A DNA stretch of 64,000 nt, taken from assembly GCF_026571515.1 (NCBI RefSeq), contig NW_026859620.1, forward strand, positions 186,001-250,000. The letters are read 5' to 3'. The translations under genes and the position numbers were made by a program. Below, piece by piece: positions 1 to 35,806 of this stretch. The DNA comes from Ruditapes philippinarum. Taxonomy: Eukaryota. The notes beneath the pieces are model-generated. The model was not told the DNA's origin and did no database searches. It was given only the letters and a program-made list of their open reading frames with translations. The stretch's first letter is position 1, and every line of letters starts with the position of its first letter.

Positions 1-2129
1 CTAATGCACTTTCTCCGAAGTAAATAATTGCGTTTCGTGCACGACTACCTTTCTAAGATGTCGTCTGCTTTATGACGCAAATGACATTGATTGTTCAGAA
101 AGTACATCTAGTGAGTCTCAGGAATTCTTATGCTCTCCACGTTGATATTTAGAACGAACAGGCAGCTCTTACACTTATGTCAGTTTCAAACCGAGCCCTG
201 CATCATTTTCAGATTTGTTGTTTTGAGCGTTCGTTGGGGATTCCGTTTATTCTTAATTTAATATTCACTAGGCTTACAATTTTAAAAAAGAGATCTTATA
301 AAGAGAAAAATAATTATAAAACCACCGTAGAATTTAACGTTTATTGGAGATAATAATAGGTGAAAATAAAGGTTTGACTATGCTTCTGAAGAAAAACACC
401 ACTGTTACATGTTATAATTATGTTTTTTCTTTTTCTTGGAAAATGCACTTTTCGCGGTACTATTTATATATAAATATGTGAATTATTGGAACGGTTTTGC
501 TTCTATCTATGTACTATAAGCGTTATCTTAAATTGAATCGGCCGCGTTATGATCGGAGCAATCGACCACTTCACGCCGCTGCACTCGTCATATGTATTCT
601 TGGGCGGTTGCTATTTACAATGGGATCTTCAAGTTTGTTGACAAAATTAGTCACTTAGCGTATTGGATATAGTTTTGTGTTTAATGGTATTAAAGATCTT
701 GGCACATGCAGTATTTGGTAAACCATGAGGACATCAAATCGTCGCTGGAAGATGTCACAATATAGGAAAACAGTCCACGGAAATAGTATCTACAAGTGTT
801 GTCTCCGCCCACATATAACCGCAAGAAGTCCTCTTTACTTGAAAAATCGTTTGTGAACTTAAGTTTCGCATTCCTTGAAATTAAATTGTCATAGTTTATT
901 AGTCATAGCGGTAAATAATGTATGGACTTATAATAATGTTCAACATTTCCTTCACTACAGCTTTAAATATAGGTTTTCTATGAAATTTTATAAAATAATT
1001 TTTACAGATTTACTTTTATAAAGAGTTGTTTTGTTCATTATACTTTCAGATCAGAACGAGCTATAGATAATAATTACGTTTATCAATAAGCCAAAAATAG
1101 CAGTTAAATTGCTTATTGGGGATTTTTGTTTACACTTTTCAATAATTTTACGAGTCTGTATGAAAAAAAAGAAGAAAAAATAGAAAATTGATATTTAATC
1201 CCCTCCTTTCAATGCAAAAGACTATTGAAATATTTGAATTTTCAAAAGTACGATCGCAGTTCAATTAAATAGTAAACTATTAAAGATATTTACTCATCAA
1301 AAATATGTTGCCCCCTGCTTTTCAATCTTTTAAATAACGTGGTAACTTGAATTTAAAATTACCATTAAATCTATTTTAAAAAAGCCTTGAATCATTGTGA
1401 CACATTTTTATGACCGCGACGTGTCTTTATTTTTAATAGTAAACATTATTTTAATGTATTTTTGTATTTTATACAATGTTTAATATTAGATCTATTATGA
1501 TATTTTATATAATTGGCAGGCTTAAAGCTCGTGTAAAGGGTTTAATGTTATATATTTATCATTCTTATTCTTTTTTATCTTTATTTAAGCACACTGTACG
1601 CAATAATTACCTACTGCGTGAAAAATGTGTAATTTTAACCCTCTGAAAAAGCTATGCATACGTTGTGCGTTATTTTAAAGAAGTATAATAAATTACAAAT
1701 AAAAACATGTATTATTGAATCACCCAAATGTTCGTACGTTTATGCTTACTCAACGCAGCGTGGTAAATATTAAAGTGGTTTTATATATTATACCAGTGGG
1801 TGTTAAAAATAGAAATTTTATTTGTTCAAATATATTTACATGGGGTCTTGATTGATCTTTATCGGCGCTGCACTATTTATTTAAACTTCCCATTCAGTAT
1901 GAACAGAGTAATTTATTACTGCTATTAAATTGTTCATATCAGCCTGGTATTATTAGATAAGCTATATTTTTAGGCTCAAAAATGACATGTCAGTTCCTAT
2001 TTTAAAACAGCTGTAAAATATATTACTTATATTTTATTAAAGAACAACATTGTTTTCACTCTTGGTTTGACACTCCTTTTAAAAGTAGAAATATGCGGTG
2101 TGTATGTAGAAAAAAAACGATAAAGCGAG

Positions 2130-2320
2130 CGTCTGAATGCAATGACATACTTGTCATTGTTGGACGTGAATGGCCCGAATCCATATTTATCTGGCGGTAA
2201 TCAAATCGTGACGTCACGAAGTACTTGGCAAGCTGACAAGAGGCGGATTTCGTCGTCTGCTCAAGTTATTCCTAGTGCATGTTGGCATTCGAGTGTTCAT
2301 CCAATATAGCTCAGTTGTAT
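2130..2320 (+). promoter_or_regulatory. Putative IRF2BP promoter
   Basis: CpG-rich stretch 240-430 bp upstream of the ATG. Contains a perfect 14-bp palindrome TCGTGACGTCACGA (2206-2219) with a full CRE core TGACGTCA, and an Inr-like TCAGTT at 2311. The TSS is not directly observable. Confidence 0.5.
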
Positions 2321-2556
2321 TTTCGCGATCAGTGAGAAACGCACGTTTGGGATTTTAGCGGGAATCGAATGACTGCACAAGAAATTATTTAGAGGAAATT
2401 ATGCACTTGAACAAGTGTTAACTGTTAAAATATGTGATTGATCGAAGATCATTAAGACTGAAAATTAGACCGATATTTTGGATTGTGTATATTTATTTGG
2501 GTTGTCTTATAATCGATTTTATGAAAACATTAAGTAAGAAGATACATTGGTAGAAA

Positions 2557-4338
2557 ATGTCGATGACACATCGGTCGCAGAGACAGCAATGTTATTTATG
2601 TGACTTGCCCCGTATGCCATGGGCCATGGTGCAGGATTTTTCAGAGCCCGTGTGCAGGGGATGTGTTAATTATGAAGGTGCCGACAGGATCGAAATGGTT
2701 TTAGATCTTGCCAGACAAATGAAAAGGGCCACGGGATTTCAAGATTCCCGTGGTCCCATTAAACCCGGGCACCATGGACCTATGCCTCCGCATCCTAGAA
2801 ACCCACATGACCATCCAGGGACCATGGAACCGCCAAGAAATCATCCGGGTTCAGTGCATGGAGAAAGGTTTGAAAGATCTCGTATGGTTCCGGAATTTAA
2901 TGGAATGCCACAAAGTATGATGCAGAATGGTGGACCTATTTCAAACCACATTGGTCGGGACGACCCGAAATCAGACATGCATAGATCTGCGCACAACGTA
3001 CCGGTGTCGCGTAGTGTTGGCTATCCACCCGGGTACCATCCATCAGTACATGGACCTTTAATGAACGGACCACCACCGGGTCACAGTATTACTCAAGGCC
3101 GGCCGGTAAATCCGGCCGTGAAAGACGACGAAGACAGTTCGAATCCCAGTGGGGACGAACTTTGGAAACGTAGATCTCCTGACGATAAAAGACCACCAAA
3201 TGTTCGTGAAAACTTGTCAATTCTTGCGACAATTGTTCCATTTGAAACAAGATATAAAAAGGATCATACTGTGTGTGGTCGTGTTATAGGATTTGATGTA
3301 CAATCTAAAGCAGGGAATGAGTATGAATTAAAAGTGTTTACGGAATACCCGATGGGCTCAGGTAATGTCTTTCCTAATATAGCTGCAGTTTCTAAACAAA
3401 TGTCAAACGATGCTTCTAAAGACCCGTCTCGTAACGCGCCCTCTCCCGGATTCAAATATCTGGAATATGAAATGAAACACGGGTCAGGTGATTGGAGATC
3501 TCTGTCTGAACTTTTAACAGAAAATGTTCGAAACTTTAAGGAACCATTAAAAAAGGAACTGTTACCAACCTTGTATATAAACACTAGTTTACCACCTGTA
3601 CCCAGTGCAAGTATGTATCGAATCCCCATGGGTCGCGGAGGTCCTGCACCAAGAGCTTATCCGGACTCGGCGGGAAGAAAGCGGAAAGGAACGCCTGATC
3701 CGGAAACGGAACAAAATGAACAAAATAAGAGACAATGGTATCCGAATCATTCCGAAGCTATGAAAATGAGCGGTTACCCTCAAAATAATGCTTCACCAAT
3801 GGGAAATCATGCCCCCAGTCCTCCTAATAGCGGCTCGGTGCCTGGACCCTCGGGACAAAATGGACCATCACCTATGGCGGCATTAATGAATGTCACAGAC
3901 AATTTATCGGGCTCATCCCCGCCCGGTCGGGAAATGAGCGCGAGGTTGCCAATTAATGGTCGTCACAACATTCATACACCATCATCAAATTTTGCACGAG
4001 CACCCCGTTCAGTAAGTGAGCCTTGTATGGGCGGATCATTATCTGAAGGAGGTACCAGCGCGGAATCTTTAAAATGTACCATTTGTCAAGAGAGACTAGA
4101 AGACACGCACTTTGTTCAGTGTCCGTCTGTTGGCGATCACAAATTTTGTTTCCCTTGCTCTAGAAACAGTATTAAAATGCAAGGGGCCGGGACTGAAGTG
4201 TATTGCCCTAGTGGTAAAAAGTGTCCCCTGGTAGGGTCAAGCGTTCCGTGGGCATTTATGCAAGGTGAAATCGCGACCATATTAGGGGAGGATTATAACA
4301 CAAAAGAGCCAAAGATTAAAAAAGAACGTGATTCGTGA
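2557..4338 (+). CDS. IRF2BPL: Interferon regulatory factor 2-binding protein family member (IRF2BPL/IRF2BP1-like), intronless CDS, 593 aa
   Basis: N-terminal IRF2BP zinc finger ([16 protein letters not shown]...[15 protein letters not shown]). C-terminal C3HC4 RING ([57 protein letters not shown]). Central block [29 protein letters not shown] as in IRF2BPL/IRF2BP1, NLS-like GRKRK, SPMAAL motif and C-terminal IKKERD. An invertebrate gene is expected to be co-orthologous to all three vertebrate paralogues. Confidence 0.97.
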
Positions 4339-5574
4339 CTTGAATATATATGGAAATTATATGAACATGTGTGCTAACATTTTGGATACTTTAACATCGT
4401 TGCGGTAGACTTCTGAAAAAATTGTTGAAAACTTGAGAGAAAAAAAAAATACAAATTTGACAAAGCTATTAAGAATCTTTTAATGTTATAATGTGTTGGT
4501 GCATGTAAATCTTTATTTTAAAAGGTACAGTTGGGCATGTCCTTAAAACGTTTAGCGAGAGATGTACATGTTAAAAGATACCGGTTTATTCTTCATTCTT
4601 ACAAAACTTCCGACATCTCTTGGTTTATATCGACTGACGCTATTTTCATAGCGTTTCTTGGAGCTAATTAACGACACGCATGCAGAATGACACACATTTC
4701 TTTTTTTCCACGTAAGATCTAGGTCATGCTTAGAAGTATATGTGATATTCCATTTATCTTAATCATGTTTAATCAAGAAAATGTTGATATTTTCTTACGA
4801 TTCCTAGCACCAGCATTATTTTTTTCTAGCTAAATGATACATTTACAGCTCTACAAAAGACGGTAATGTGTGGCTTGAAACATTGCAGTATCGATCGGGG
4901 TTTCTCGTGTTTCAATTAATATAGGAACTTTAGTAAATTAAGAAGAAACCAGGCTAAATATATGACCATATATGTATGTAGTACTGTTTTATGTTAAATT
5001 AACCGCTTTAATGGAAAAAATTGACCGTATGCATAAAATCAGAGAGAGAAAAGAAAGTAATGAATGATTTACGTCGCCTAAAGATTTATTGTTGATTTCT
5101 ATATTTTGATATTTTTTGTGGCCATTTTAACTTAACGTGAACTGCCACAATGCGTTTATTTAAGAAAACAAACGTTCTCTTGTTTTTGTATCGTTTTAAT
5201 ACATTCGGCCGGAAAATCGCTTTTAATTTATATATTAAGACTAATTTCCACTCACTATTTTGTTTATTTATGGTAATACATGTAAAACAATATTTGAAAT
5301 TTTCGCAATACATGTACTTTAATGTCAGTGAGTTTATAGCGATTTTATATACCAATTTTTTTTCTACCAAACTAAAGTATACAGTTTAATAATTTTAAAA
5401 TTTTAACTCGTGTTAATAATAACTATTGTCTGAATTGTTTTGATTTATCATTATATAATGTGCTATTGTTATGATACTGTTTTTTTTTAGCTTTTTGTTG
5501 ATGATCGTATCTTACTGGAAGCTTATGTCTGTTACAATTTATTACTGTTTTTTTTTTTTTCTTTTAAAAATGTA

Positions 5575-5580
5575 AATAAA
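5575..5580 (+). terminator. Probable IRF2BP polyadenylation signal AATAAA (3' UTR about 1.25 kb)
   Basis: AATAAA preceded by TGTA and U-rich tracts and followed by a GT/T-rich downstream element (about 5594-5620). Confidence 0.5.
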
Positions 5581-5720
5581 TATGTTAAAAACACTGTTTT
5601 CGTCATTATTTTGTTTATCAGCTAGTTTTTAATGTATTTTATTACCAAAGGTATCAATTAATTCTCCTGTATTAGAATTAAGTACAATTTTCTTTATTTG
5701 CGATTGAACTACATGTACTA

Positions 5721-5900
5721 TACTCTTAACGTGCTAAATATCTTAAATGGACTTGACCATCTTTCAATCTGGACGAGACCATTGATGATTTGTTAGGGAG
5801 AAATACAAAAATGAGTACGATCAGTGTAGACAGTGATCAGACGATTCAAATGCGCTTGCAAATGGTTCATTGGTAGATCCGGTTGCCGCTAAAAGGTTAA
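5721..5900 (+). mobile_element. Dispersed ~200-bp MITE-like family (TAAAATGGACTTGTCCA core), decayed copy
   Basis: Related copies at about 34839-35036, 36362-36590, 51570-51787 and 55748-55890 (+), and 37897-38562 and 63743-63949 (-). Several ends resemble TTAACC..GGTTAA. Confidence 0.55.
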
Positions 5901-8900
5901 AATATCAATAACAATAACAACATCAAAATTAAAAACTATATGGCTATAAAAATGTCGCTTCTGTAATAGTTTTAGTTATTGATATAAAAGGATATAAAAT
6001 ATGCATAGCAAATTCACAGCGTACGTTTATATGCTGATACCTAAATTAAACCAGAGAACTTGGACGATAGTTTAAGGGTACAGAAAAATTGGGTCCAAGG
6101 ACTGACCTTTTTATTCGGCCATATATCATGTTAAGGCGCCTATATTATAACTAGTAACGTTGCTATTTACTTCAAAATATCGCGTGTGACAATTTAATCC
6201 GCAGTAAACACAGGGTAACTGAGTCAAAATGAATTATTTCTTCACGCTCCGTGCTCAAAATGTCTTTATTTTTCTCCCAATTTCAAAACTTTTAACATTT
6301 AATTTCACCACAATATTTTATTTTCATCACGTTCGAATAACGCAATTTCTGTATTATAACTCTTGAGATGAAGTTTATGTTAATGAATGTTTGCTTCTCT
6401 GATATGTGGACCGAATGTTTAATTCGGCAGAATAGAAATCAGTCACGTTCCGTTTAAACAGAGTGTGTCATATCTAAAGCCTGTGCCAATATTGGTCTCA
6501 AGTATTAGACACCCGGTCACGTAACGGCGTGTGCCGTATCTTGATTAAAGCTAATAATGTGTGTGACTTTGGATTTTCTGCACCCCTTTTAAAAACGTCT
6601 TTCGGTACTTTATAACATGCGATATCTGAAGGGGGTATAAATCACTCGAAATGCACGCCCGAGCCGTCCCTACCTCTTGTACTATATTATTTATTCAGAG
6701 TATGATTGAGTAATGTAAATGTAAGCGATTCTTCTACTAAACTACTCAACCAAATAAGTGTGATTCTCGGGTAGGTTCAAATTTGAATAGCTTATGAAAT
6801 GAATATAAGAAAAATGCACTTTATCTGTACTTTTCGTATACGCACTTTAACGTATTTAAAATGTTTGATATTGCAATAATATACCCCACACCGCTTTGTA
6901 AGGCGGTGTTAAGGTGGTGAGGATTTAAATCAGTACAGAAAATTTCTGAATGTTTTAAGTGTTATTGACATATTTGTTATGGCATAACTTACTTTGGGTA
7001 TATAACGAAAATATTTCATAATCAGCGAGTTTATTGATACGCATTTTTAGGGCACTGAAATATTTACGGAAATCAGGTCAGCGGATCGATTCAACTATTA
7101 TCAAAGAAGATTGACTTTTTCAACATCTATGCTTATTGCTTAACGCTATTTCGGCCTACTTAATTATAGTTAAAAATATTTCACAAAGTGAGAGAAAGAA
7201 AGAAATACGTCTTAATGTGTATTTTTGCAAAAGTGAAAATATAATGTATATTATACTTCAACATTAATTTACACATTTAGTGTATTTGCAGTTATTCAAA
7301 ATATACCATCAAACTACTATATAGTACAATGTATTTAAAATAGACATAATTTGAGAGTACATGTTCGTGATAATAAATCATCAGTCATGGTTACTTATAG
7401 TATATGACCTTAGATAAATAAGATTAGTACCTATTAAGTACTAACTAAACAAGAAATACTTAAGTACTATGCAATGTTTGCTTTTGGTTGATCCGCCGCT
7501 GTTTAGGACTAAGTAAGTGAATAGTTCGGCAGTAATGCACCGTCACGCGATGAAAATCCGTTGCACTCTTGTATGAAAACGTAATAATAATTCTCTTACC
7601 CCTATAGGCAAGTTCTCTTGTTTTAAATCAGAAGATTATATCATTTTTCCACTCTGTCATCAAAAGAGGGCCTCTTCCTTCCTGTGATCATTGTCGTTTT
7701 GTGTTGGTTTTTTTGGTCGCATTGGGGAAAAGAAAGGAAGAAAATTGTAATATCGTTTCTATAAATGTAAGTGGAATCACTATAAGCTGTATGGAATGAC
7801 TTATTACTCTTTCTTTGCGAGGCAATGCTATCGAATAAAACGTCTGCTTTTGCAATATGTTCTTGCAGACGTTTCTCGGTGTAAGCTATGAGCTGATATC
7901 CGTTTGCATTTCCCATATAGACAGTAATTATCATATTTACCTGTTGTAAATGCTTTGTTTAAATACATTGATAATTCAGTGTGAAAGAGGCGTGATTATC
8001 ATAGTCACTGTTATTTACCATAAATCACGTCAAGAGATCTGGAACTTCCAGCGAATTATAACAAAATATTTATATTATTGGACATTTGTTGACCTAAAAA
8101 CACGTGCATTACTTAATTTTAGGACAAACTTTTCGCATTTCAAGCACCCGTTCAAAAGTCTTATTAAATATCTAATATTATTTCTAACATATACAATATA
8201 AATATATTCTGCAATGATAGCACACTTTCACTTTGATTTTGACTTACGTATTGCATATTTCAAGGGTCACGGAATAGTATACATTAAAGTGGGTCACAGT
8301 TTGAACCACAGACTGCACGGATTTACAGGTCACCCGAGTCCACAACATTTGGAATATATACGATCCTGTCATTCCTGGACCGGAATTTTTATATGTAAAC
8401 ACATAATAAGAATAGCTGTGGTTTGTGTGAACGGTGTCCTTTTCCGGCATTTTGTTCAGATGCCCTTGTCATAGTTATCAATCTTGCATACGTAAACTGA
8501 AGGAGGTATGCCGGACGCCTGTGGGCACAACAAAAGCGACTAATTGATGGTCATTTAATGCACTTTGTCTTTTTATTTCTGACATGACTTTGATTGCCAT
8601 ATTTTATACAGACCAGTGATTTATTATAGTATCAGTCTCAAAATGTAAATATTATGATTGTGTCAAATGCATGTAGGGCAGACCAAAAACGTCGCAGGTT
8701 TTGTCTTAATTGTTGGTTATTAACGTCCTTTTGCGTGGTTTCTTTGTTGCTTTGCATTGCGAAAAAAAATGCTGACTAAGCAAATTTGCACGTGTGACGT
8801 TCGAGTAGCGCTTTATTCGGATAGTAAATTTTTATCTGTTTTTTTTAATGTTTTTTTTCCAGGATCAATCGTTTCTTTTAGCACGTACCTTGAGATCTTA

Positions 8901-9967
8901 ACTTACGTTCACAGCTTTCAATCATTTTGTTGCTGTTTTCCATCTTTCACTCTACTTCACGCAGCTCAGTGAAAATTTATGAGTTCGCATCAACCTTGGA
9001 ATACTAAATTACCAATAATGCTATTTTAATCGGAAATCGATTTGTCATTGTTGTTTATACGGCGACATTATCATATTTCTGTTATATTTTGCTCGATCAT
9101 TGCTAATATAAGAGGTGCTATAGATTTTTGCACTGCGTGGGGTGACCGGTTCTTTGGTATTGGAGACGAAACTATTTCAGAATATTTCCACAACGCTTTC
9201 TGTTCGAGATTGCTTAATTCCTAGACCCGTTTTACTCGCTGATAAACCGATTACGGAAAATAGGAGATAAACGATTTTGTATTATCATACCTTTGTTAAA
9301 GTCTCGTGCTGTGAAGTCAGGCAACCCGTCTTTTGATATCACTGTCTTTCCTAAATTGTAACTCGTCACGCGAGGGTCACGTACCCTGTTTATATATACC
9401 CGTATCTTATACAGGATTATGAGATATTGTGAATTTTAAACATTTTACTTTAGATTAGACTTGCACGATATTGCATACCTGCGTATTATTTGAGTATGTT
9501 ACAAAAATAACATTTTGGCAGACGACAATTTGGAGATTACGCTGCACAAAATAGAGCCAACTGAAATGATATGACATTAAATTACTGCATTTTTAAATAT
9601 AGGTCTTCAAAATAAGTTCAACCGAAAACCGAAATAGTTTACATTTAATTACCTATTTTGACAACTTATTGAAACTAAAGATTGCCGCATTTGTAGACGG
9701 TGGAGGGTAGGGGGGTATACCCGGCACGCGTCGACCAACATCGCCTACATGCCCATTTTTCTATGTATTTTTATTTGATTTTTTGTTTTGTTTTTAAAGA
9801 AGTTCATATCAATGGCATGAACCGTATGTTAACTCGCTTATAGCCATTGCTATGCTATTAAATATCATGATATTATATCTAATACAACAACAAACAAATA
9901 AAAATAATACACAATACCCGGATGCACACCGTATCTTAAACATCAATGATATTGTACAGCAATAATT

Positions 9968-10202
9968 GAGCCGTGTCATGACAAAACCAACGTAATGCGT
10001 TTGCGACCAGCATGGATCCAGACCAGCCTGCGCATCCGCGCAGACTGATCAGGATCCATGCTGTTCGCTCACAAACCCTATTACAAGTAGAGAAACTGAT
10101 AGCGAACAGCATGGATCCTGATCAGACTGCGCGGATGCGCAGGCTGGTCTGGATCCATGCTGGTCGCAAACCCATTATGTTGGTTTTGTCATGACGCGGC
10201 TC
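9968..10202. mobile_element. 235-bp foldback MITE, copy 1 (GAG...CTC termini, 4-bp TSD; Sola-like by inference)
   Basis: Terminal inverted repeats of about 100 bp. Flanked by AATT (9964-9967) and AATT (10203-10206). Confidence 0.85.
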
Positions 10203-13200
10203 AATTTTGCAAATTAACATACTGCACCTGGCTGCATGAAGAAATAGGTTTGAATTACTTTGTGTAACGTGTCAGTGTTGAAACATTTAAGCATTTATTC
10301 CAATTATTCAAGTTTTATTGTAAATATAAACGCAATGGTTCATGCTTAAATTACGGGGAATGATTTGAACTCATAAGGTGACCAGCCTGCTCAAATCACG
10401 TGTCAAGGTCTTAATGAATTCTTGACATGGACCGCAAACATTTATTATTGTAATAGCCGAAGAAATTATTCGGCTGTTAACTATAGATGTGTAAATTAGC
10501 AAGGCTTAAATAAGCTAGTTGTTGAAGGGGCATACAATACCACGCTACAATACCACGCATTGTATTAGAAAAAAAATACACATTTGTTTTTAGGTTCATC
10601 GGGTGCGACATTTTTTTTACGGGATAGGGAAAATTGGTTTTACACCGTAAGCTTTTCGCGTCTTTTTATTACTTAATTATTAGTACATCTTTTGGCAAGT
10701 GGTTTTTACTTATGGTTGTTTTGTGATGAATCCGCGGTAATGTATTAGGAAATACGTTGAATAGTATCAAACAGAAGTTGTTGCTTTCATCATGAAGAAA
10801 AAAAAGTATCGTGGGAGTAACACACAAAGTGGAAGTTAATATAGCACGTGCAGTTACGCACGTGTAGAACTGCATACGAGTTTTCACGAATCTAATGTGA
10901 AACAAGACAGAAACTTCTATACGTTGTCAAAAAGTGAGCGATTCTGCAAATCGTCGAATACTTTTGTATGGTGTATATGGAGAAAAATAATCCTTAGAAT
11001 CAGAACACACCTCGTGCCCAATTCGTAAAAAAAAACACATACATTGTAATAACTGACATTATACAAAACGACATCCTTAGTACATGTTTCCTATATATTT
11101 AGTTGAAACGAAACGGAACAGTCAGTCTTGTGATTTTTTGAGATTTATAACCATTAGCAAGCTATTATGTTGTAGATGGAAAATGTATGTGACTGCACGA
11201 TCTTGTAAGTGGATACATTGTTCACAGATGAAATGACGAACGCAATTTCCGGAAAATAATAGAGCAAAAGCTATGTTTTTAGAATCTTGCAAGTTTTTCC
11301 AAGACCATTAATCTGCCTCATGTATGCGTCAAGTGGTGTATGTACCCCGGCTGATATTAAATAATAGGTGATTGTTTTGAACCGGAAGTAGTGATATTTG
11401 GTTCGTAAAAATCGTACACCGCGAAATTCTACAATTGATATTTTATTCAACAATCAAAAGAAAGCTCCTTGAATGAAATATTGTTACGATAATATGTCAT
11501 TTATTAGGGTTTCTGTGTCCACAGCTCATATCTTTCCGGTCAACATCACTTCCGGTACGCGCCATGTTTATCCAAGCGTCTGTATGCCATGATGAGTGTT
11601 CTTCTGCTTCCCTATTCTCATTGACATGTCAGGTTATGCAAATTAAGAAGCTTATCATTCAAAACCTTTGTGACAATGTAGGGCATGAAATGAATTTGTG
11701 GAACGCGTTTCCTTGTTGCGTAAGTCGGCTATGAATATGTATGAATTATTATTGACTTAAGCTTAGAGACTTGACTAGTTTGTCACTGACTGTTATTTAC
11801 ATTTTCTTTACTGCTTATTTATTATCCCCCATAAAGTATAATACTGTATTAAGTGTGTCAGAAAGTTGGTAGCTGGCCAGACCGCCTTTGATTTGTTACT
11901 ATTCGCTCTCGGTGGGGTCTGAATCCGCTGATATGAACGCTCGAAAAAAAAATATATAGATGTAGATTTATAAAAGTACGTGTGCTATGCCATTCATTTA
12001 AGATTCGATTGAAACAAAATTCGAAAAGAGTACCGTAACCTTTGATTTTCGTGCGAATATAAGGACATTATGTATAAACGTACTTGCCCTCAAATATTTT
12101 AGATATGTATGCGCAAAAGATAAAATGTTTTCAAACTTCAAAATAAGAGTTTGTTAACATCAGGGCTATTTGATCTGTTTGCGTTAAAATATATAAACGG
12201 AAATACCGAGAACGCTAGGGAAAAGTTGAATTTGGTTTCTGAAGGTCACGAGTTTTGGGACAGAAAGATAAATGTCTCATTCAGATAGCTTCACAAAATA
12301 ATGTTTCTAGGTTATTTATAGAATTACAAAGTATTATTGAATAACCTTATTTCTGTTTATTGATGTTTTGCTCTATAAGTACTGGTTAGTTATTGTGGCG
12401 AAAGATGTGTTAGGTTTTAAAAATGTTTATTATTTTTTTTAATGTCAATAAAAACGTGCATGCTGCATGGTACGCCCACGTGGATACCGGAAACTGTTCT
12501 CGTTAAGAGCTTAATGAAAGTCGGTTTTTGGTCTTAATAATTATATGTGCACGTTAGCGTTTTATTTGCACCCGAAATTCGAATAAGATTGTTTATCGAT
12601 TAATTTATATTTATAGTAATATAGATAAAATCTCTAACTAGTCGTATATATACTATTATAATTATGTAAATATATACATATGTTTTAATTTTAGTTTTAC
12701 TTAGTATCAGATACTATTTAAAACAAAGTACAAATTAAATCAAATTATTTGCATGGTTAGTTTGAGTTTTAACTTCATATATCTCATGTTGACTACTTTT
12801 TACAGTTTCAAGGTCACGTGTGCACTCAGACTTTTCTAATCCACCTATTTAGTGTAAGGTATTTTCACACAGTTTTTTACTACATTATCTGTTGAATTAA
12901 AGCGACATTATGAATGATACTCGACGGTTTCGACGCCTTACTACACTCATGAAAAGTACTTAAACCCTGGGCTGCTCTTTAGGAACGCCACAGGGTTCTC
13001 TGTATACGGTGTACCTTTTCGCTACTTATGACGTCTTTGCGCATCTTAAACGCCTCCGTTTCCAGGTTACTCGGTTTTCGTTGATAATTCACATTTATAG
13101 GGAAAATTAAGAATCCATGTTCACCAAGGAGATTTTGAATGATGACCAGATAAAAAGTGGCAATCGTGGGATATCTTAAGTCGGAACAATTTTTGCGATA

Positions 13201-14150: not shown

Positions 14151-17100
14151 AAGTTCATGAACATATTTTCTTTGTGAAAGGTCCTGAAAAACGTGACGCC
14201 AATGTCGGATTCTAGATAATTTTTAGTTTTTTATATAGAACTCAATGTTATATCTACATAGAAACATACGGCAAGTTAAGTTAAATCTATGTTACGAAGA
14301 GTTTGCCAGACTGTAACCCCTCAAAAAAGGTCATTTATAAACCGGATGGGATCTTTACAAGATACCCATTGGATCTGTGATCGGTTATTATCGGATATGC
14401 GTTCTTTATATCATATATATTTCACTATTTACGATTTATTCTATACAAATGGCTGTTTGCAACATCTTGAAAAGATATTTTAATGTATTTTAAATCATTC
14501 AGCTTGCATTAAATCAAAGAATAAAAATCTACTAACCACTTGCCGGGACCAGTATTTAGCATAAGAAACTGAGATAAACAATAGAACTAAAGCAGTATAA
14601 AACGAAATCTTCCCAATTTTTATGACATAGGCAGTGCATGTTTATGGATTAAAGTCAAATTTAAGAGTCGTAAATCAAATTTAAAACATATTCTTCTTAT
14701 AAATCAAGCAAGGAGAGCAGTTAACAAAAATGTGTACAAATACAAGTGAAGCAGTGCTTCGTTGCGTGATTATTAGATTAAATAGGCTGCGTATATATTT
14801 CCGTGTCTTGTTTTTGCTGCGTAAATAATAATTACATAAGCATATCAACAAATTATGTTTTTTTTTTCAGATTTAGATAACCCGCTTGAAACATACGTTG
14901 CTACTTTCGTTCGCAGTTTTGCAGCGAAAGTGTCCTCTAAGTGGATTATTATCAAATATTATATACCACACTCGCTGCACTTGCTATATACGTCCCAAAT
15001 GTTACACTGTTACATGAAATATTTTACGATGCAGGAAAACAACAATTATTATATACACGGGCGCGTGTCTGAACAGCAGTTTTCTGTTGTTTTGTTTGTT
15101 GATGTTGTTGCAATTTATTTCATCCTAGAACACAAACACGGAAAATCTTATGTTAAAATGATTTATAAATTTGAAAGATTTGTAGATTAGTTGTTGTATA
15201 TTGTATGTGTTTAATCTTAATACTATCATATACTGTAATGCGCATGTCCATTATCTTCCCGCCATTCATATTTATAGTATAAAGCACAGATAATTGAAAG
15301 ATAATATTATCTAACAGTCTATAAAATTAATAAACGGTATCGATTAAGAAATTATCAATGAGTCTACATGTGAAGGATTGTATTTGATCCAGCTATAAAT
15401 AGCTCCTAAATAAGGAGATCTTGTCTGCTGCAGAATTTGTACGTGAAGCTAAATCTGCCTGTTTGAGGTGGACCATCAGTATAATAGAGCCAAGCAACAA
15501 GCAAACAAAAACATGCGTGTAAAAGCACCGGTAGAACACATTATTTAGTAACAGTTTTGAAAAAATAGATGAAAATAGGTTTAGGAAAAAAAACGCTTTG
15601 GGACAGTCGTTGACAAAATCATATAATGACAATGTCCTCGATTGAGATCGAGTTAAATGCAATGCCAGAGTAAAAAAAAGCAGCAGAAGAGATGAGACAA
15701 AAGATAACGTTAAGGTGACTACCTTATTCCTTAATCGTATTTTCACAGCAACGCCGGAATTTTGGAAAAGTATGTTTAACAGATAGGAATAAATTTTGTT
15801 TTCATTGCCTGTCAGGCTTTATCTTCTTTGACATAACATTCGTATCAAGGATTTAGCCGTTATACCGTTGCGGTGCAGCCACGTTTATTTATCAAATAGT
15901 ACGACACCTCCCTCTTCAGAATTTTAGCTGCCGCGGACTGATACATGAGCCAGCTGGGCCAAAGTACGGCTAGAATTCCTTCCGCGTCGAGAAATGAAAG
16001 TGGCTAGTATTGGTTACAGGGGTATTAATACCCCCCGGCCTGTGTTTGTCAAGAAAATAAGTCTTAAAATGATAGTAAAGACGATTATGTCAATGTTTAA
16101 CATTGTATGGTTGTCATATGTTCACTGTTCTACAAGTGATTTTTAAACGCTTGCCACTTTAGGGACATTTTCCTTTTTCTAATGGGGCGAATGATTAGAA
16201 ATTAGTAGTCTATTGTAGTTACGAGTCATAATTGAATTTCGCGGAATGGTTTATCATGTTAATTTCCTTGATTTTATTTCTCACCAATTCTGATTTGTTA
16301 AGTCTTAACTGAAAATTTAAATACACGCACTCGTATAGAAATTGCATTTAGTTTATCTATATATGTTGCGCACGTGAATACTATCTCTGACAATGTGTAA
16401 AAAAAATCTTTGTTTACTATTTATTCCAATGGTTCTATAATTTTTACGAAAACAGCCAACAGAGGGCATATATACTCGTACATGTATTCACGTTCATAAA
16501 TTGTCACTGAAAATCCTAAAAAAAAATCATGCTTACAGACTGATAAAAACCGCTTCCTCGTAGCATATATATAAAGTGGGTTGATGAGTTGTTAAAGATT
16601 GAGCACGGATGGAATTCAGAAATTCACGTTATAATGTAACGTACGTAGAATGTGCAACGAGACCACCATAGCAGACGTTGTTGTAGGTAACCAATTCTAC
16701 CCCAAAGTACTCTTTTTCAAGTTGTTCAAGTTTACCTGCTCATGGAAAACACATTTGCCATATTTCAAAATCTATCAAGGCACATTCTCGCATAGTTTAT
16801 AATTCAAGAGATCTTTCCTGCTAGAAAAGAAGAAAAAAACATGAGAGAAAAACATAGCAGCCAACTGCGAAGAAAAAAAAAGAATGTTACGTGAATGAAA
16901 CTGTCTGGTTCACTTTGTTATAGAAATGTTTCTTCCTTAAAGTGAATGAAGATAAATGCATTGGAAAACGTTATGTGGCGGAGTCGTCATTTAATTATAC
17001 ACTTATGAAATTTATTGTCTACTGCTACACGAAACGCACAAATAATTAAACGCAGTATGCGTATCGGATCGTTAAACGTCATGCACGTCGCATATTTTAA

Positions 17101-17950
17101 TAACATCATGCAATCGCACGCGCAGAACGTACAGACATTTCTCTTGTCGGCCTTGGGTTTATGTCGGTCGATTGTTACTCATTATTATGCTATTTATAAT
17201 TGTTACGCCAACAAAACCTCAACGCTTGAGGCTTTTTTCACGTCTTCCCGGCTGACCTCCGTTTGTCAGCGCTGTCAACTTGTCGTATGTATTGGCAAAG
17301 TCGCGTTCCGTCAATCAAACGCTGACCTGTGACGTCATTCACGTAATCGTCTCAGGCATGCAAAGCCCGGAGGGAAGGATATAATTAGCTGAGAATATTT
17401 CGCTTTAAGGCAGGTCGGAACATTAAAAAGATAATTGCGACATTATTTCAGGTCGATATCTTCTAATGCCATTTTCCAATTGTGTCCCAATTTTAAGGTG
17501 TAGTTTATTGCACGACAGAAATACGCCTACGAAGCTCAGCGGAATTTAGCTGTTTGATAACGTCTGGTAAAATTAATAAAAATTCTTCCTGATAGTTTCT
17601 TTTACACACGTGGGAGAGTTCCGATCTAATTTAAGATCAAATGTAGACTAAGGTCATAACATTTAATCAAGGCGAACATTTTTAACTGATTTTCATCTGT
17701 AGTTCTATTTTCTGAACAGTAGGAAAATTATTTCTCGTAAGTATAACTGAATAAGAACTGTATATACTAACAGTTTAAGCAATATAAAAGGTATGTTTGT
17801 TAGCAGAAGACAAAAATAAGTCAGGCAATGTTAAATTGACATAATGAATTATACTTTTATTTGATATGTATACAAATAAATTGTACGCGAAAGTTAGCAG
17901 AGCGTCTAGTTTGTATTTTACTTCGTGATTTGTTTGTTCAGCATTCGTAT

Positions 17951-18026
17951 CATCGTCGGTTACCCACGGTTTATATTCCGTACAATGAAGTATGTACGGA
18001 ATATATACCTTGGGTAACCGACGATG
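17951..18026. mobile_element. 76-bp hairpin MITE with 9-bp TSD
   Basis: 34-bp arms CATCGTCGGTTACCCACGGTTTATATTCCGTACA / TGTACGGAATATATACCTTGGGTAACCGACGATG, flanked by direct repeat CATTCGTAT (17942-17950, 18027-18035). Confidence 0.75.
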
Positions 18027-19628
18027 CATTCGTATTAAAGATCATATTCTTACATATATTTGAGATTTTCAAACTATTATAGCTTGAAATTATGAAAAAG
18101 TATCAGTTTTGAATCGATGTAAGCGCTCAACAAATGATATGTACAGACGACATTTGATGCGACCAGAAGACATGCGACGCAATCAGACGACATGCTGAAT
18201 AAGCAGACGATAGGATGATACGCGATTCTAACATGAGACTTAAATTTATCTGAATTGAATACAGTCAAAAATGAGGTTCAATAACCGGATATTCGTATTA
18301 AAGGGAGTACGGGATATCCAGATCTTTTGTTGAAAGAAGGGCCAAGTATCAAATTACTATGCGTGCAGTGATACTAAAGAGTAGAATACGGCGACGGTCT
18401 AAAATTACGTTAAAATATCAAGATACTATAATATGCAATAATAATTGCTTTTAAAATGATAAAAAGGAAGTTGGTTTTTTTAATCCTATAAGCTATCTGT
18501 TTACAACACTTTTTATGTTGTAACAGAAAACTTGGGAAGTTTTTGTTTTGTTTTTTAATTTAAGAAAATGGCAATTTCTGCTTTATTTTCTTTTCATTTG
18601 TGCATGAATGCCATTAATTTAGAGAAGTTGTTTCATTTCGTTTTACATCACGTATCGACTTTGTGCAAAACTGTTAAAAGTAAACTTAAAAGCGACGTTT
18701 CAATTACAACCACGTGACATGTGCATAAAACTTGTGTTTTTCTATATCTCATTTTATATATGAAATAAACGAGCGGTTTGCATGTCAGAAGCACTATACC
18801 GGCAGTCGTTACAAAGACCCGACATCAGTGCTGTCAATAATAGATAAAGCTAGAAACATTTACAAAATCGCTTCTTTACGTGACAGTGAAAATTAAATTG
18901 TCTAAAATTTAGGCATTGGCAGATCGCCATTCCGCTAAGATGTCTCTTTACTTGGAAAGTAGTGAAGAGTTTGCATGCTGCGCAGAATTAGCGTGATGTT
19001 TTCCGGAGAAAATGGCGGACGCGGGCGCCATCTTGGCGGACTGTGTTTCGTGTAACGCAAGGGGACGGGTTCCAAACACGATCTTTGGAAAGTCTTCAGA
19101 GCCATATTTCCTGCTGTGGCGAAGCTGAATTCACGTTTCGCATGAACAAATCGCGTGATGTTATCAGCTTTTCCCAATGTTTGCTAATTAGGTTTAAAAC
19201 ATTCTGGGTTCTTTTTGCCTTTGATAAGGAATATTACACAATCGTTTTTATTTCATTACAATAATGCTTTAAGAAACATTAAATTGATACAATCTGATTT
19301 AAAGAAGAACTGATGCGGCATTAATTACCCTTTTACGATAATAGTTTATTAAACTTTTTTGCCAATCCGTGAAGTGCCCATTTACCGTGATATCTTGTAG
19401 TAATTGTCGGTCCCTCCTCGTTCTTATGTTAAATTAATTAAACATTAAAAAAGAGAAATGTGTTTTTTTTAAAGTAAAAAAAATGTTAGTGTTCAGTGTT
19501 GCTCTTTCAACGTAGTGGTCTAGTAACGCTGTGCCTGTGTCCGTAAAGGTGTTTGGTTCGGTTCGATTTGATTTGAGCCTCCATTTTGATGGTGTTTAGA
19601 CCAATATATAGTATCTTCATCATTATTA

Positions 19629-21026
19629 TTTTTTAACCAGGTTTTCCGAAGGAAAAAACTGGTTATTAGATTGAGGTATGTCGGCGGGCGGGTGGGCGGA
19701 TGGGCGGACGGGCGGGCGGGCGTAAACAATTTCTTCTGTGCGCAACTCCTCCTACATTTCTCAACGGATTTTGACCAAACTTTCACAGAAGCTTTGTCAT
19801 CAAGTGCCCTGGCGCATATTGTCGGGGTTTTGCGATTAGATAATATTTGACCTAATTATGGCCCTTTGTTTTTTTCCTTATATAGAATATATAGTGAACA
19901 ATTTCTTCTGTGCGCAACTCCTCCTACATTTCTCAACGGATTTTGACCAAACTTTCACAGAAGCTTTGTCATCAAGTGCCCTGGCGCATATTGTCGGGGT
20001 TTTGCGATTAGATGATATTTGACCTAATTATGGCCCTTTGTTTTTTTTTTCCTTATATAGAATATATAGTGAACAATTTCTTCTGTGCGCAACTCCTCCT
20101 ACATTTCTCAACGGATTTTGACCCAACTTTCTCAGAAGCTTTGTCATCAAGTGCCCTGACACATATTGTCAGGGTTTTGCAATTGGTACATATTGGACCT
20201 AATTATGGCCCTTTGTTTTTTTTTCATTATAGAGAATATTATAGTGAACAATTTCTTCTGTGCGCAACTCCTCCTACATTTCTCAACGGATTTTGACCAA
20301 ACTTTCTTAGAAGCTTTGTTATCAAGTGCCTGGCACATATTTTCGGGGTTTTGTGATTGGATAATATTTTACCGAATTATGGCCCTTTGTGTATTTTTTC
20401 CTTATACAGAATATAATAGTGAACAATTTCTACAGTGCGCAACTTCTCCTACATTTCTCAACGGATTTTGACCAAACTTTCACAGAAGCTTTGTCATCAA
20501 GTGCCATAGCGCATATTGTCGGGGTTTTGTGATTAGATAATTTTTTACCTAATTATGGCCCTTTGTTTTTTTTCCTTATACAGAATATATATAGTGAACA
20601 CTTCTTCTCTGCGCAATTCTGTGCGCAACTCCTACAATTCTCTAGGGATTTTGACAAAACTCTCGCAGAAGCTTTGTCATCAACTCTTGCTGCATGTTGT
20701 CAGGGTTATGAGATTTGATAATGTTAGACCTAATTATGGCCATTTATTTTTTTCCCTTATATAGAAATATATTGTTTTTGTTCCATATATAGAATATAAA
20801 GTGAACAAATTCTTATTTGCACACCTCTTCCTACAAACTATTTTGACAAACTTTCACAGAAGCTTTCTCATCAAGAGTCCTTGTGCATATCATCGGGGTT
20901 TTTGTGATTTTGGGTGGGCGGGCGGGTGTTCACTTTAAAACAAATGCCCCTGCATGACGAAGCTTCTGTGAAATATGAAACATTTTGCTGAAAACCTGGT
21001 TGCATCGCATTGCGATGTTCCTTGTT
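19629..21026 (+). mobile_element. Helentron/HINE-like non-autonomous element with about 6.5 tandem 172-175 bp monomers
   Basis: Starts in a T-run. Subterminal IR AACCAGGTTTTC / GAAAACCTGGTT, (GGGC)n microsatellite, monomer starts at 19725, 19897, 20072, 20247, 20422, 20597. 3' hairpin CATCGCATTGCGATG, then CCTTGTT. Confidence 0.8.
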
Positions 21027-21027
21027 A

Positions 21028-21034
21028 ATTATTA

Positions 21035-21106
<72 letters not shown>
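21028..21106. repeat. (ATT)n microsatellite
   Basis: Near-perfect ATT run directly after the HINE-like element. Confidence 0.95.
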
Positions 21107-21107
<1 letters not shown>

Positions 21108-23149: not shown

Positions 23150-24668
23150 TTTTTTATGCTTCCCGAAGGGAGAGCATATAGTCGCCGCCTTGTCCGTCTG
23201 TCCTTCTGTCCGTCCGTTGTCTTGTCCGGAGCATAACTTGAAAACACTTAGAGATAATTTGTTTAAACTTCACACAGTGGTAGAGGACATCGAGGCAGAG
23301 TGCAGTGTCAAAGAACCATAACTCTATTTTGCCCCGTTTTTGTATTATCTCCCCTTTTAGAAAAATCTTATCCGGGACATTACTCTAAAACTATAAGAGA
23401 TATCAACATGAAACTTTGTAGGAAGAAAGATCTCAATGCGTAGTTGTGCGGTGCACAGGAACCGTAACTCTGCCCTACCTTATTTTGGAGTTGTTGCCTT
23501 TTTGTTCATTTTAACTTTTTGAACATTGTCCGGAACATTACTTTAAAATTATAAGAGATATCAACATGAAACTTTGTAGGTAGATAGATCCCATTGGGTG
23601 GAAATGCAGTGCAAAAGAACCATAGCTCTGTTCAGCCCTGTATTTGAATTATCTCCCCTTTTAGAAAAATCTTGTCCGGGACATAATTCTAAAACTATAA
23701 GAGATATCAATATGAAACTTTGTAGGTAGAAAGATCTCAATGGGTAGCTGTGCAGTGGACAAGAACTGTAACTCTGCCATGCCTTATTTTGGAGTTATTG
23801 CCCTTTGTTCTTTTTTACATTTTGAACTTTGTCCAGAACATAACTCTTAAATTATAAGAGATATCAACGTAAAACTTTGTAGGTAGATAGATCTTATTGG
23901 ATAGAAATGCATTTTAAAAGATTCATAACTGCTCAGCCCCGTTTTTGAATTATCTCCCCTTTTAGAAAAATCTTGTCCGAGACATAACTCGATAATTATA
24001 AGAGATATCAACATGAAACTTTGTAGGTAGATAGATCTCAATGAGTAGATGTGCAATGCATAAGAACCATAACTCTGCTTTGCCAAATTTTGGAGTTATT
24101 GCCCTTTAATTATTTTTACACTTTGAACTTTGTCTGGGATATTACACTAAAATTATCAGAGATATCAACATGAAACTTTGTAGGTCAATAGATCTCATTG
24201 GGTAGAAGTGCATTGCAAAAGAACCATAACTCTGGTTAGCCCTGTAATTGAATTATCTCCCCTTTTAGAAAAATCTTGTCCAAGACATAACTCTATAATT
24301 ATAAGAGATTTCAACATGAAACTTTGTAGGTAGATAGATCTCAATAGGTAGATGTGCAGTGCACAAGAAACGTAACTCTGCCTTGCCTTATTTTGGAGTT
24401 ATTGCCCTTTGTTCATTTTTACATTTTAAACTTTGTCAGGGACATAACTCGGAAACCATAACAGGTATCAACAAGAAACTTTGTAGGTAGATAGATCTCA
24501 TTTATTAGAAGTCCAGTGCAAAGAACAGTTACTCTGCCTTGCCTTATTCTGGAATTATTGCACTTTGAACTTTGTCCAGGGACATAACTCTGAAACTACA
24601 AGAGGTGTACTTTCCTGTGTCAAAAACCTATTCGGGGAGCATCACCCAGTTCAAACCGGGCTCTTGTT
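23150..24668 (+). mobile_element. HINE-like element with alternating ~158/~146 bp monomers
   Basis: Subterminal IR ATGCTTCCCGAA / TTCGGGGAGCAT, (GTCC)n microsatellite, internal array, 3' hairpin, then CTCTTGTT. Confidence 0.8.
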
Positions 24669-25632
24669 ATTGTTATATTTCCAATATTATAGTAGCTGAT
24701 TTTAATCAGATTTGCTCTTGTGCGTTCGTCAGTCCATCAGTGTGTTAGTCACATCCATGTCTGCTTGCTTGATAAATTTTACGTTTTCAAGGTTTTCCTG
24801 TCTTCATACTTATTAAGGAGAATAATTATTACTAGTAGATGAATGCTCTAGATTGTGTGGTCATTATGTCAAAGGTCAAGGTCACAGTGACAGACACTTA
24901 ATGTGAAATCATTGTCTGCTTAATAACTTGAGAATGAATAAGTCTGGGTTTCTGAAACTTGGTAGGGACATTGCCCATGGTCTGTAGATGACCCCTATTG
25001 ATTTTGAGATAATTTTGGCCAGAGGTTAAGGTCTGAATGCTACTTAGTGGACACTTCTTGTCTGCTGAAAAACTTGAATGGGGGCCTAAATTCTCGAAAC
25101 TTAGTAGGAACATAAAGCTCATGATCATTTAACGCCCCTGTTGATTTTAAGGTCATTATGTCAAAGGTCAAGGTTACTGAGTGACAATTAGTGGTGGAAA
25201 TTCTTGTTTTATTTTAATTCTTCATAGTTCAGCATCATACATCTTGTACATAAATTGAACATATGATGCTCTGACAATCTTGATAAATTTTTAACTGCAT
25301 GAGACTTAAGATGAAAAATGTTGTTAATAACATTTAATATTGTAAACATGTCAGATATGGTGAAATAAAAGACTTCCTGATGAAAGCCTAGATTTGAAGT
25401 ATGGTAAATTTATACTTTAAAAAGTATCAAGTTTTGCTGTTTTGAATATTTGTAAGATATCTGGTTATATGGATGTCTACACCAGATTGCTAAAATGTAG
25501 TATTTTTAGTGAGATTTGATTTTAAGAAGTTTATAGTTTCGAAATATACTACAAAAGGTGAATAAAGTCAATGTGTGTTGACTATACAAGGTGCCTAATT
25601 GTCTTCCTCTAGACATCTATAAATAATGATTT

Positions 25633-25945
25633 TATGCTGTTTTTCCCCCATTTTATGATGTTTTCTTTTCATTTTATGCTGGTCTGTTTTCATTTAATGC
25701 TGGTTTGTTGTCAATTATGCTGGTTTGTTTTATTTTGGTTTGTTTTTAAGTATGCTGGTTTGTTTTCATTTATGTTGGTTTGTTTTCATTTGATGCTAGT
25801 TTGTTTTCATTTATGCTGGTTTTTTTTCATTTTATGATGGTTTGTTTTCATTTTATGATGGTTTGTTTTATGCTTGTTTGTTTTATTTTATGATGGTTTG
25901 CTTCCATTTAATGATGGTTTGGTTTTATTCTGATTTGTTTTCATT
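25633..25945. repeat. ~21-bp minisatellite (TTTATGCTGGTTTGTTTTCAT)
   Basis: Visible tandem repeats. Confidence 0.85.
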
Positions 25946-27452
25946 AAATATGGCATTTGATTGGTCAGAATTGATGCAGCACAAAATCTACTGAAGTACT
26001 CTTTAAGTCTTACTAATGAAAATACTGAGATTTGAAACAGAACTCAGAACAACAGTTTAATAACCTTGGTTAAAAACCGTCACAGACAAATTCTGAAAAC
26101 ACAACAGAGCCTGCTGCTTTTAAATGCAGATGGCGATAAAATGATTTTATTCTACAGCAATAAAATCAACCGTCGTTAAACAGTTGCGTACAATTTTATT
26201 ATCGCGAGCATGTCAGGTGGATGTTATTTATTATATATTATATGAGATTTTGTCACACAATATAATAATATAAAATCAATTTAGGGCTTCTCTCCAGTGC
26301 CATGACATTTTGGTCTCGAATTCATAGAATACTCCACCGTGTACTATCATATAACGATATTAATTTGAAAAAATAATTTCAAAGGAAGGAAAACAGCAGG
26401 TTTCTGTCTGCGAAGGTTTTTATTTAGAAGTGACATTTTATCCATGATTTCTCGACTGTTAAATGCAGTGTCATGAAAAGTGCCGTCTTTTCTTTTACGC
26501 TGGATTTTCTGTCCTTAGATCTCAAAGGGATTGTGTATATATGCATGTAATTGTATTGGAGAGTCATGGCATGTCATATATCAGACAATCTCCTGGTGGT
26601 ATTGACATGTTACATATGTCTTCTTTTTTTGTAGGTTCTGTAGATTAAATGTTTTTCAAGATAATGTAAATGATTTACATAGGAAATTGTAGCTCAGAAA
26701 TGAGTAATGTCAGGGGGGGGGGTTTTGTGTGTGTTTTTTTGTTGTTTTTTTTTCACTCAAACTTTTGTTATTTTGTAGAATAGAAGAAATATTGAAGATG
26801 CAAAATTCTAAAATAAAAGGAGATCCCAGCAGACCTATAAAAAAATATATGTGTACACTATTCAATTAATTAAAACCTGCAGACTCAATTTGAGTCTGAT
26901 GGTGAGAATTATGATATACTGAGTGCAGTAGATGTTGTTTATAATTTTAAAATGAGCTGGTCCCTCAAATAGTGACAGAGTTATGGCCCCTTGAACGGCA
27001 ATATTGATGCATATTTTGATTTATGTACATTAAAGCAATTTCTGAGTTTTGATTTATTTTCAAACAAATTTACATGCACATAGAAACTTGTATCACAAGA
27101 AGGAGCTGGAAAAAATGCTGAAAACATCATACATTACAAAGTGGATTAAGCCACTAAAAGAGCAGAAAAAGATGCCAAAATGTTTGTAAGATTTTTACGA
27201 CTTCATTTCCAAAATTGCGAAGTCTTCAAGTCAGTTTTGTATGTGGTGTTGAACTTTGTCCTGGAATGACCTTGAACTTGATCTAGTGACCTACTTTTTC
27301 ATAATAGACATTATGGCATTGTCTAGCACTTGTATTCAGGTGAAGGATCTAAGGCCATCATGGATTAATAGCCTATTTGTTTACACATTTTGTATGATCT
27401 TATCTAATTTCCTGGCATTTTATTTTTAACCAGTATTTTTATATATTTTCAG

Positions 27453-27549
27453 AATTCCAGATGTATGTGAGTCACCAAATGTTAAAAAGGCCAAAGATCT
27501 AATCCAAGATTTGTCCCATATCAAAGACCAGGTGAAAGATTTGGTAGAG
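27453..27549 (+). CDS. KIAA0586: TALPID3 internal exon A (..IPDVCESPNVKKAKDLIQDLSHIKDQVKDLVE)
   Basis: TTTTCAG acceptor, GTAGGT donor, phase 2 to 0, open coiled-coil-like frame, phase-compatible with exon B. An alternative acceptor is possible at 27460. Confidence 0.7.
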
Positions 27550-35746: not shown

Positions 35747-35806
35747 AATATTGCTGTAAAAGCCGAGACCTGACAATGAATGAAATCTTTAAATTCAACA
35801 GTATTT

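Follow-up and report, generated by a model that had tools for sequence, protein, structure and literature searches.

An intronless IRF2BP gene nested on the same strand within a single TALPID3 intron of the clam Ruditapes philippinarum, a likely ancient arrangement

Nested gene structures are rarely lost once they have formed, and nesting on the same strand is the rarer orientation; host-nested protein-coding gene pairs in animals were reportedly surveyed by Assis, Kondrashov, Koonin and Kondrashov in 2008. Between phyla, most gene order has been lost to rearrangement. Among described systems, the closest to the locus considered here are the Dact1 locus, where gar carries talpid3 and irf2bpl as a pair flanked by dact1 and timm9, and tilapia has the pair adjoining dact1 (Schubert et al., 2014, BMC Evol Biol 14:157; PMC4236578), and the ancient microsyntenic pairs and genomic regulatory blocks (GRBs) of bilaterians (Irimia et al., 2012, Genome Res 22:2356; PMC3514665; Kikuta et al., 2007, as cited in PMC3514665). 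Here we analyze a 64,000-nt stretch of the genome of Ruditapes philippinarum, a heterodont bivalve (the window; NCBI RefSeq assembly GCF_026571515.1, contig NW_026859620.1, positions 186,001 to 250,000 of the forward strand), which holds an IRF2BP gene and much of a TALPID3 gene. IRF2BP family members are transcriptional co-regulators, and TALPID3 (KIAA0586) is essential for ciliogenesis. We consider it very likely that the clam locus carries an autonomous, intronless IRF2BP inside one TALPID3 intron, and that this is an ancient nest retained chiefly for structural reasons. Positions outside the window are given on the contig with the prefix C8107; the window is G000:C8107:186001-250000 (+), with its base 1 at C8107:186001, in a contig of 819 kb and an assembly of 1.41 Gb.

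The TALPID3 intron and the IRF2BP gene within it

The IRF2BP coding sequence (CDS) occupies window 2557-4338 (C8107:188557-190338, + strand) and is intronless, a single uninterrupted open reading frame (ORF) of 593 codons plus stop spanning 100% of its orthologues. The predicted protein contains, in this order, an IRF-2BP zinc finger (PF11261, residues 8-58, E 3.6e-32), a middle domain (PF25457, residues 206-338, E 6.5e-51), and a C3HC4 RING (PF25454, residues 505-576, E 9.7e-34), each far above the Pfam cut-off, which assigns it to the IRF2BP family. It has 956 homologues at E<=1e-20, shares 85% identity with Mactra antiquata IRF2BP1 and 91% with a Logan protein, and is present in one copy in the clam genome. 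An in-frame stop immediately precedes the first ATG of the ORF. The putative promoter and 5′ untranslated region (UTR), at window 2100-2556 (+), form a local CpG-rich patch with a CRE-like motif, TGACGTCA, at 2209-2216. The putative 3′ UTR (window 4339-5600, +) ends just past an AATAAA at 5575-5580, the sole such hexamer within 1.6 kb 3′ of the stop codon; the whole host intron contains 86 of them.

TALPID3 lies on both sides of this gene. All searches were run exon by exon, with single exons or database proteins as queries, and the bivalve TALPID3 queries were found via the coiled-coil exon and Mytilus TALPID3. In a genome-wide six-frame scan with the Pfam TALPID3 family (PF15324), + strand matches were obtained on this contig alone; they flank IRF2BP and follow the profile order from 78 to 1180, with profile positions 78-157 at C8107:148581-148799, 37 kb 5′ of the window, and positions 377-1180 from window 44448 onward. 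Four of the exon matches exceed the 27-bit cut-off, and the coiled-coil core is among the matched parts, identifying the host as a TALPID3 gene. When the region C8107:106001-270000 was compared with TALPID3 proteins, residues 11-2298 of the Mercenaria TALPID3-like X2 protein (2,298 aa) were collinear over 29 tblastn high-scoring segment pairs (HSPs) at C8107:134247-260745, and a 54-nt exon (window 28557-28610) brings the number of coding exons to 30, with a coding region of ~126.5 kb. The clam exons are 53-96% identical to those of Mercenaria mercenaria, most of them at least 75%. The Mya protein and two Logan proteins yielded an exon map identical to that from Mercenaria, and Dreissena and Mytilus TALPID3 agree with it, leaving a few small exons unmatched.

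The exons that flank IRF2BP fit each other exactly. Nine 5′ coding exons are located at C8107:134238-150629, i.e., 36-52 kb before window base 1, where the first-pass annotation, made from the window alone, had expected the N-terminal part of the gene. The last of them (C8107:150539-150629, +, 91 nt, phase 1 to 2) is preceded by an exon at C8107:149650-150028 (+) that ends with one extra base (phase-1 donor). The first exon after IRF2BP (window 27453-27549, +, 97 nt, phase 2 to 0) has a ...ttttcag acceptor, a gtaggt donor, its first full codon at 27454 and no ATG start context, and is thus internal, as the earlier annotation had it; it is 76% identical to Mercenaria residues 916-948 and corresponds to Pfam TALPID3 positions 326-356. 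Mercenaria residue 916 is common to both flanking HSPs (C8107:150538-150630 and 213451-213549), with no orthologue residue missing, and the codon split across the junction C8107:150629/213453 is AGA, the residue in Mercenaria likewise being Arg. Joining the phase-1 donor at C8107:150028 straight to the phase-2 acceptor at window 27453 was considered and ruled out, as the 91-nt exon fits between them. From the seven bivalve TALPID3 proteins, no + strand HSP was obtained between ~5600 and 27452, a stretch that the earlier annotation had also found to be without coding exons.

The gap between these exons is accordingly a single intron, because residue 916 is shared, the phases fit, and a GT..AG intervening sequence contains IRF2BP as its sole long ORF. 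This host intron extends over C8107:150630-213452 (+) and measures 62,823 nt, from the phase-2 donor at 150629 to the phase-2 acceptor at window 27453; window 1-27452 (+) is its 3′ 27.45 kb. Apart from IRF2BP, no ORF in the intron is longer than 204 aa, and the one of that length is tandem-repeat-like. No Rfam match was obtained in the window or in the 40 kb 5′ of it (C8107:146001-186000). The entire IRF2BP CDS falls within this one intron, and the collinear orthologues and matching splice phases confirm, at the level of gene structure, the same-strand nesting that had been proposed for an intron of more than 27 kb, although the intron is far longer, at 62.8 kb.

The remaining TALPID3 exons in the window continue on the + strand. 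Two small exons, at 28557-28610 (54 nt, phase 0 to 0, equivalent to 18 Mercenaria residues between adjacent HSPs) and 30002-30067 (66 nt, phase 0 to 0), were missed in the first-pass annotation, whose distance of ~70 codons from 27453 to the conserved coiled-coil was close but becomes ~90 with these exons included. The coiled-coil exon itself (window 44367-44587, 221 nt) is 90% identical to Mercenaria and matches Pfam positions 377-423 (E 1.4e-8). It is followed by exons given here by their HSP limits, at window 45661-45735, 49331-49561, 53025-53198, 54454-54585, 55108-55344, 56193-56393, and 63281-63409, and 11 more exon matches lie beyond the window, reaching C8107:260745.

Conservation of the gene pair and its neighborhood

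Gene order in other animals was read from fused or split gene models, from accession order, and from matching scaffold sizes. In the GenBank annotation of Dreissena polymorpha, KAH3852978 covers TALPID3 residues 1-879, KAH3852983 is IRF2BPL, and KAH3852984 covers TALPID3 residues 881-2219. The break in Dreissena TALPID3 coincides with the clam junction, residues 883-912 aligning to window 27460-27549. In teleosts, a fused model of Silurus meridionalis consists of TALPID3 Pfam positions 21-322 followed by a complete IRF2BPL, that of Arapaima gigas has Pfam positions 1-314 and then IRF2BPL, and that of turbot has a complete IRF2BPL followed by Pfam positions 306-422. The junctions were placed by BLASTP against shark TALPID3 (a MAFFT alignment misplaced the teleost rows there): the segment before IRF2BPL ends in the homologue of the clam 91-nt exon, and the segment after it begins with the homologue of the clam exon at 27453. 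Therefore, fish IRF2BPL lies in the same intron and on the same strand.

TALPID3 and IRF2BP(L) also have near-consecutive accessions in seven further species. Among bivalves these are Mya (XP_052767111/112 for TALPID3 and XP_052767114 for IRF2BP(L)), Argopecten (XP_069118021/22 and XP_069118023), Mizuhopecten, where both are on the same 318-kb scaffold (OWF51359 and OWF51357), and Mactra (KAL4237536 and KAL4237539). The two genes look like neighbors also in the gastropod Babylonia (XP_076442427-429 and XP_076442425), the hemichordate Ptychodera (XP_070577910-913 and XP_070577909), and the sea urchin Diadema (XP_072170263 and XP_072170275). Synteny of the block is thus found over long evolutionary distances, in bivalves, a gastropod, a hemichordate, a sea urchin, and teleosts, partly by proxy. 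The nest was most likely present in the bilaterian ancestor, because the teleost models share the intron, Dreissena is consistent with them, and the genes appear as neighbors in the gastropod, the hemichordate, and the sea urchin. The first-pass annotation had argued for a pre-vertebrate linkage from paralogous human segments, one of them with IRF2BP2. The linkage is borne out by Dreissena, the teleost models, the accessions, and the gar and tilapia loci (PMC4236578), whereas the vertebrate partner proves to be IRF2BPL rather than IRF2BP2; overall, the gene-order evidence is stronger than the paralogon argument.

As a side observation, gene prediction repeatedly goes wrong at the nest. The three teleost annotations fuse TALPID3 to IRF2BPL, and the GenBank annotations of Dreissena, Mya, Mactra, and Mizuhopecten have TALPID3 either in two pieces or in a form truncated close to the nest, Mya WAR20188 being an example of such a half-model.

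On the 5′ side of the pair, a TIM9 exon is located at C8107:127187-127345 on the − strand (L009:1187-1345), ~7 kb before the start of TALPID3 and ~59 kb 5′ of window base 1. It matches PF02953 with 30 bits, and in the PDB its top hits are TIM9 of human and of yeast (E 1e-8 to 1e-6, compared with E 0.008 for Tim10B), so that, over the one exon covered, TIM9 is favored over TIM8, 10, and 13. The exon points away from TALPID3, i.e., the two genes are head-to-head, and vertebrate TIMM9 and KIAA0586 are oriented away from each other in the same manner. Timm9 is also a neighbor of the Talpid3/Irf2bpl pair in vertebrates (PMC4236578). With the TIM9 exon upstream, the conserved block extends to TIMM9-TALPID3(IRF2BP), and TIMM9 was probably already positioned head-to-head 5′ of TALPID3 in the bilaterian ancestor.

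In the wider neighborhood, C8107:118000-124000, 5′ of the TIM9 exon, is CpG-rich, with a CpG observed/expected ratio (o/e) of 1.2-1.7. TOM20 (PF02064) was not found on the 819-kb contig and was found on other contigs; its first exons at G000:C85:12491-18560 and C1896:18569-18664 have nearly equal scores, and these two contig copies may be haplotigs or a recent duplicate. A search for the ARID4 RBB1NT domain gave no match, yet its control was silent too.

CpG composition and repeats of the host intron

In bivalves, low CpG o/e is characteristic of germline-methylated gene bodies. Around IRF2BP, CpG o/e is 0.7-1.34 in a ~50-kb domain centered on the gene (C8107 ~160000-210000, or window -26000 to +24000, of which window 1-24000 is the part within the window), compared with 0.2-0.5 in the TALPID3 gene body on both sides. 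In composition, therefore, the nest looks like an unmethylated island within a methylated host. The domain includes two CpG-rich patches (window 8751-9500 and 16751-17750), each of them single copy and a candidate unmethylated regulatory element. Repeat candidates number 2,904 per 10 kb in a sample of the CpG domain vs. 19,070 in a CpG-poor TALPID3 intron. Young repeats do not seem to explain the domain, because the patches are single copy and repeat candidates are fewer. This composition is circumstantial evidence that would fit a private regulatory landscape of IRF2BP.

Several repeats were noted in the TALPID3 introns in their own right. A palindromic repeat of ~245 bp, resembling a miniature inverted-repeat transposable element (MITE), occurs on both strands at window ~9962-10208 and ~35803-36050; its 39 scored genomic copies (of ~2,900 and ~19,000 candidates) are each 91-98% identical on the better strand. 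At window 19500-20950 (+), units of ~170 bp are repeated in tandem and give rise to open frames that overlap one another and in which a NNFFCAQLLLHFSTDFD-like peptide recurs; this array lies in the host intron and probably represents a satellite or the remains of a degraded element. Other tandem or low-complexity arrays with long spurious open frames on both strands are found at window 40200-40560 and 48400-49060, both in TALPID3 introns, and at C8107:173300-176400, in the 5′ half of the host intron.

Persistence of the nest and comparison with known systems

The arrangement suggests how the two genes might coexist. IRF2BP would be an autonomous unit that has a start codon of its own and comes with a candidate promoter and a candidate polyadenylation (polyA) signal. 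TALPID3 transcription would cross this whole unit, including its promoter and polyA site, and splicing would then remove the host intron, joining C8107:150629 to 213453; nesting logically entails that host transcription would read through the IRF2BP polyA site. As to retention, the simplest force would be structural: a breakpoint parting the genes would cut the essential host gene, and because of this, such a lock could suffice for persistence. A second, unproven force may be a regulatory landscape of IRF2BP within the intron, where the surrounding ~50-kb domain looks germline-unmethylated. A more far-reaching version would hold that, from the protostome-deuterostome ancestor onward, the pair has been nested on the same strand in a single orthologous intron, held there jointly by the risk of breaking the host and by a self-contained ~50-kb germline-unmethylated IRF2BP domain that host transcription crosses; we put this forward tentatively and regard it, in this full form, as rather unlikely.

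Several observations weigh against an ancient, structurally retained nest, or limit what can be read from the comparisons. RNA reads over three exons 5′ of the intron had a depth of 0-1.8 in 4 runs, with no junction read, a result that is uninformative rather than negative, since repeats dominated and just 4-6% of the raw-read runs entered the analysis: the runs had been chosen by highest word share, those words matched intronic repeats, and read depth was in the hundreds to thousands at the repeats L011 3172-3505, 4174-4340, and 5844-6000. The IRF2BP transcription start site and polyA site have been placed from sequence cues alone. The fused gene models are annotation errors, which give order and strand, not distance. 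Beyond the Dreissena and teleost models, the cross-species comparison is based solely on accession order and matching scaffold sizes, which are proxies of neighborhood and not coordinates, and by the same proxy the two genes are non-adjacent in Leuresthes and Pinctada, with accession numbers that differ by 833 and 678, respectively, although each species has them on a chromosome-sized contig in common. In human, IRF2BPL is at 14q24.3 and KIAA0586 at 14q23.1. More generally, tetrapods have kept Talpid3 alone at the Dact1 locus, with the genes separated (PMC4236578).

Among the rival explanations, a genomic regulatory block has to be taken most seriously. Under this explanation, IRF2BP is a developmental target gene with enhancers spread through a bystander TALPID3, and it is cis-regulatory dependence, not nesting, that keeps the pair together. 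This is possible, and would accord with the deep conservation of the linkage, the co-regulator function of the IRF2BP family, and the ~50-kb domain with CpG o/e near 1 vs. 0.2-0.5 in the host gene body, with its single-copy CpG-rich patches and fewer repeat candidates; nevertheless, we lean away from it. The CpG domain is confined to the host intron and leaves the other TALPID3 introns outside, so that a bystander is not needed beyond the nest, and CpG o/e is a mere proxy for germline methylation. In addition, tetrapods parted the genes without evident harm (PMC4236578).

Two other explanations dispense with an inherited nest. TALPID3 might be split into separate N- and C-terminal genes with IRF2BP between them, as the lack of junction reads and the two-half GenBank models of Dreissena, Mactra, Mizuhopecten, and Mya would allow, but this is very improbable given that the flanking-exon phases fit exactly, that the junction codon encodes the residue seen in Mercenaria, and that exon 27453 has no start codon. 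Both halves are, moreover, joined in one ORF in the RefSeq models of Mercenaria, Mya, and Dreissena, and in the Logan proteins P0155 and P0159 (2,232-2,247 aa), whose contigs of 7.2-7.8 kb we take as transcript contigs. We consider it just as far-fetched that IRF2BP retrocopies were inserted independently in molluscs and fish, or that the contig is misjoined. The gene is intronless, like retrocopies, and large introns are big insertion targets; against this, IRF2BP is single copy in the clam, the teleost models agree with the clam in the intron that it occupies, the exons on either side, and the strand, with consistent numbering in Dreissena, and the neighbors recur in the hemichordate, the sea urchin, and the gastropod, as does the TIM9 neighbor elsewhere. 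Nor do runs of N hint at a misjoin: the window has none, and neither do the 60 kb checked on its 5′ side (C8107:126001-186000). The nest inside a single TALPID3 intron therefore remains our preferred explanation.

If the nest is ancient, few examples of ancient microsynteny would be as clear-cut as this protein-coding gene, which would have kept its intron, host, and strand in lineages as distant as clams and fish, and, together with TIM9, the nest would mark an ancestral bilaterian gene block. It would also explain why TALPID3 is recurrently split, or fused to IRF2BPL, in annotations. Methylome and chromatin data from bivalves could put the sharp CpG contrast between host and nest to the test, as a case of an embedded regulator that keeps its promoter, polyA site, and probably unmethylated landscape under host transcription; should the far-reaching version above be true, the locus would be a natural model of how the chromatin domain of a regulator coexists with read-through and with gene-body methylation of an essential host. 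KIAA0586 is involved in Joubert syndrome and IRF2BPL in the neurodevelopmental disorder NEDAMSS; because both genes matter in human disease, their shared locus ancestry may interest vertebrate geneticists.

To our knowledge, no nested IRF2BP/TALPID3 case has been described. Our literature search found neither the nest nor its conservation in invertebrates, and the sole mention of the two genes as neighbors was that for the Dact1 locus (PMC4236578), the pair list of Irimia et al. (PMC3514665) being outside the scope of the search. The linkage in fish was thus already noted in passing (PMC4236578), and the nest and its invertebrate conservation appear to be new. At the Dact1 locus, the same two genes are adjacent beside timm9 in gar and tilapia, as TIM9 is directly 5′ of TALPID3 in the clam; unlike in our analysis, they served there as markers in a synteny figure for Dact1, and no nesting, shared intron, or invertebrate was described (Schubert et al., 2014; PMC4236578). 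The pair resembles the ancient microsyntenic pairs and GRBs in that unrelated genes are linked across bilaterian phyla, and IRF2BP-TALPID3 may be among the ~600 published pairs (Irimia et al., 2012; PMC3514665). GRBs likewise combine a regulator with a large housekeeping-type partner with long introns (Kikuta et al., 2007, as cited in PMC3514665). In the clam, by contrast, the regulator lies inside the partner gene and a purely structural lock would be enough, while enhancers within the bystander, the defining feature of a GRB, are here a hypothesis. Finally, the pair is like other host-nested gene pairs in that a whole intronless gene sits in an intron of a larger gene, and it differs from most of them in being nested on the same strand and in the same intron in both a mollusc and teleosts.

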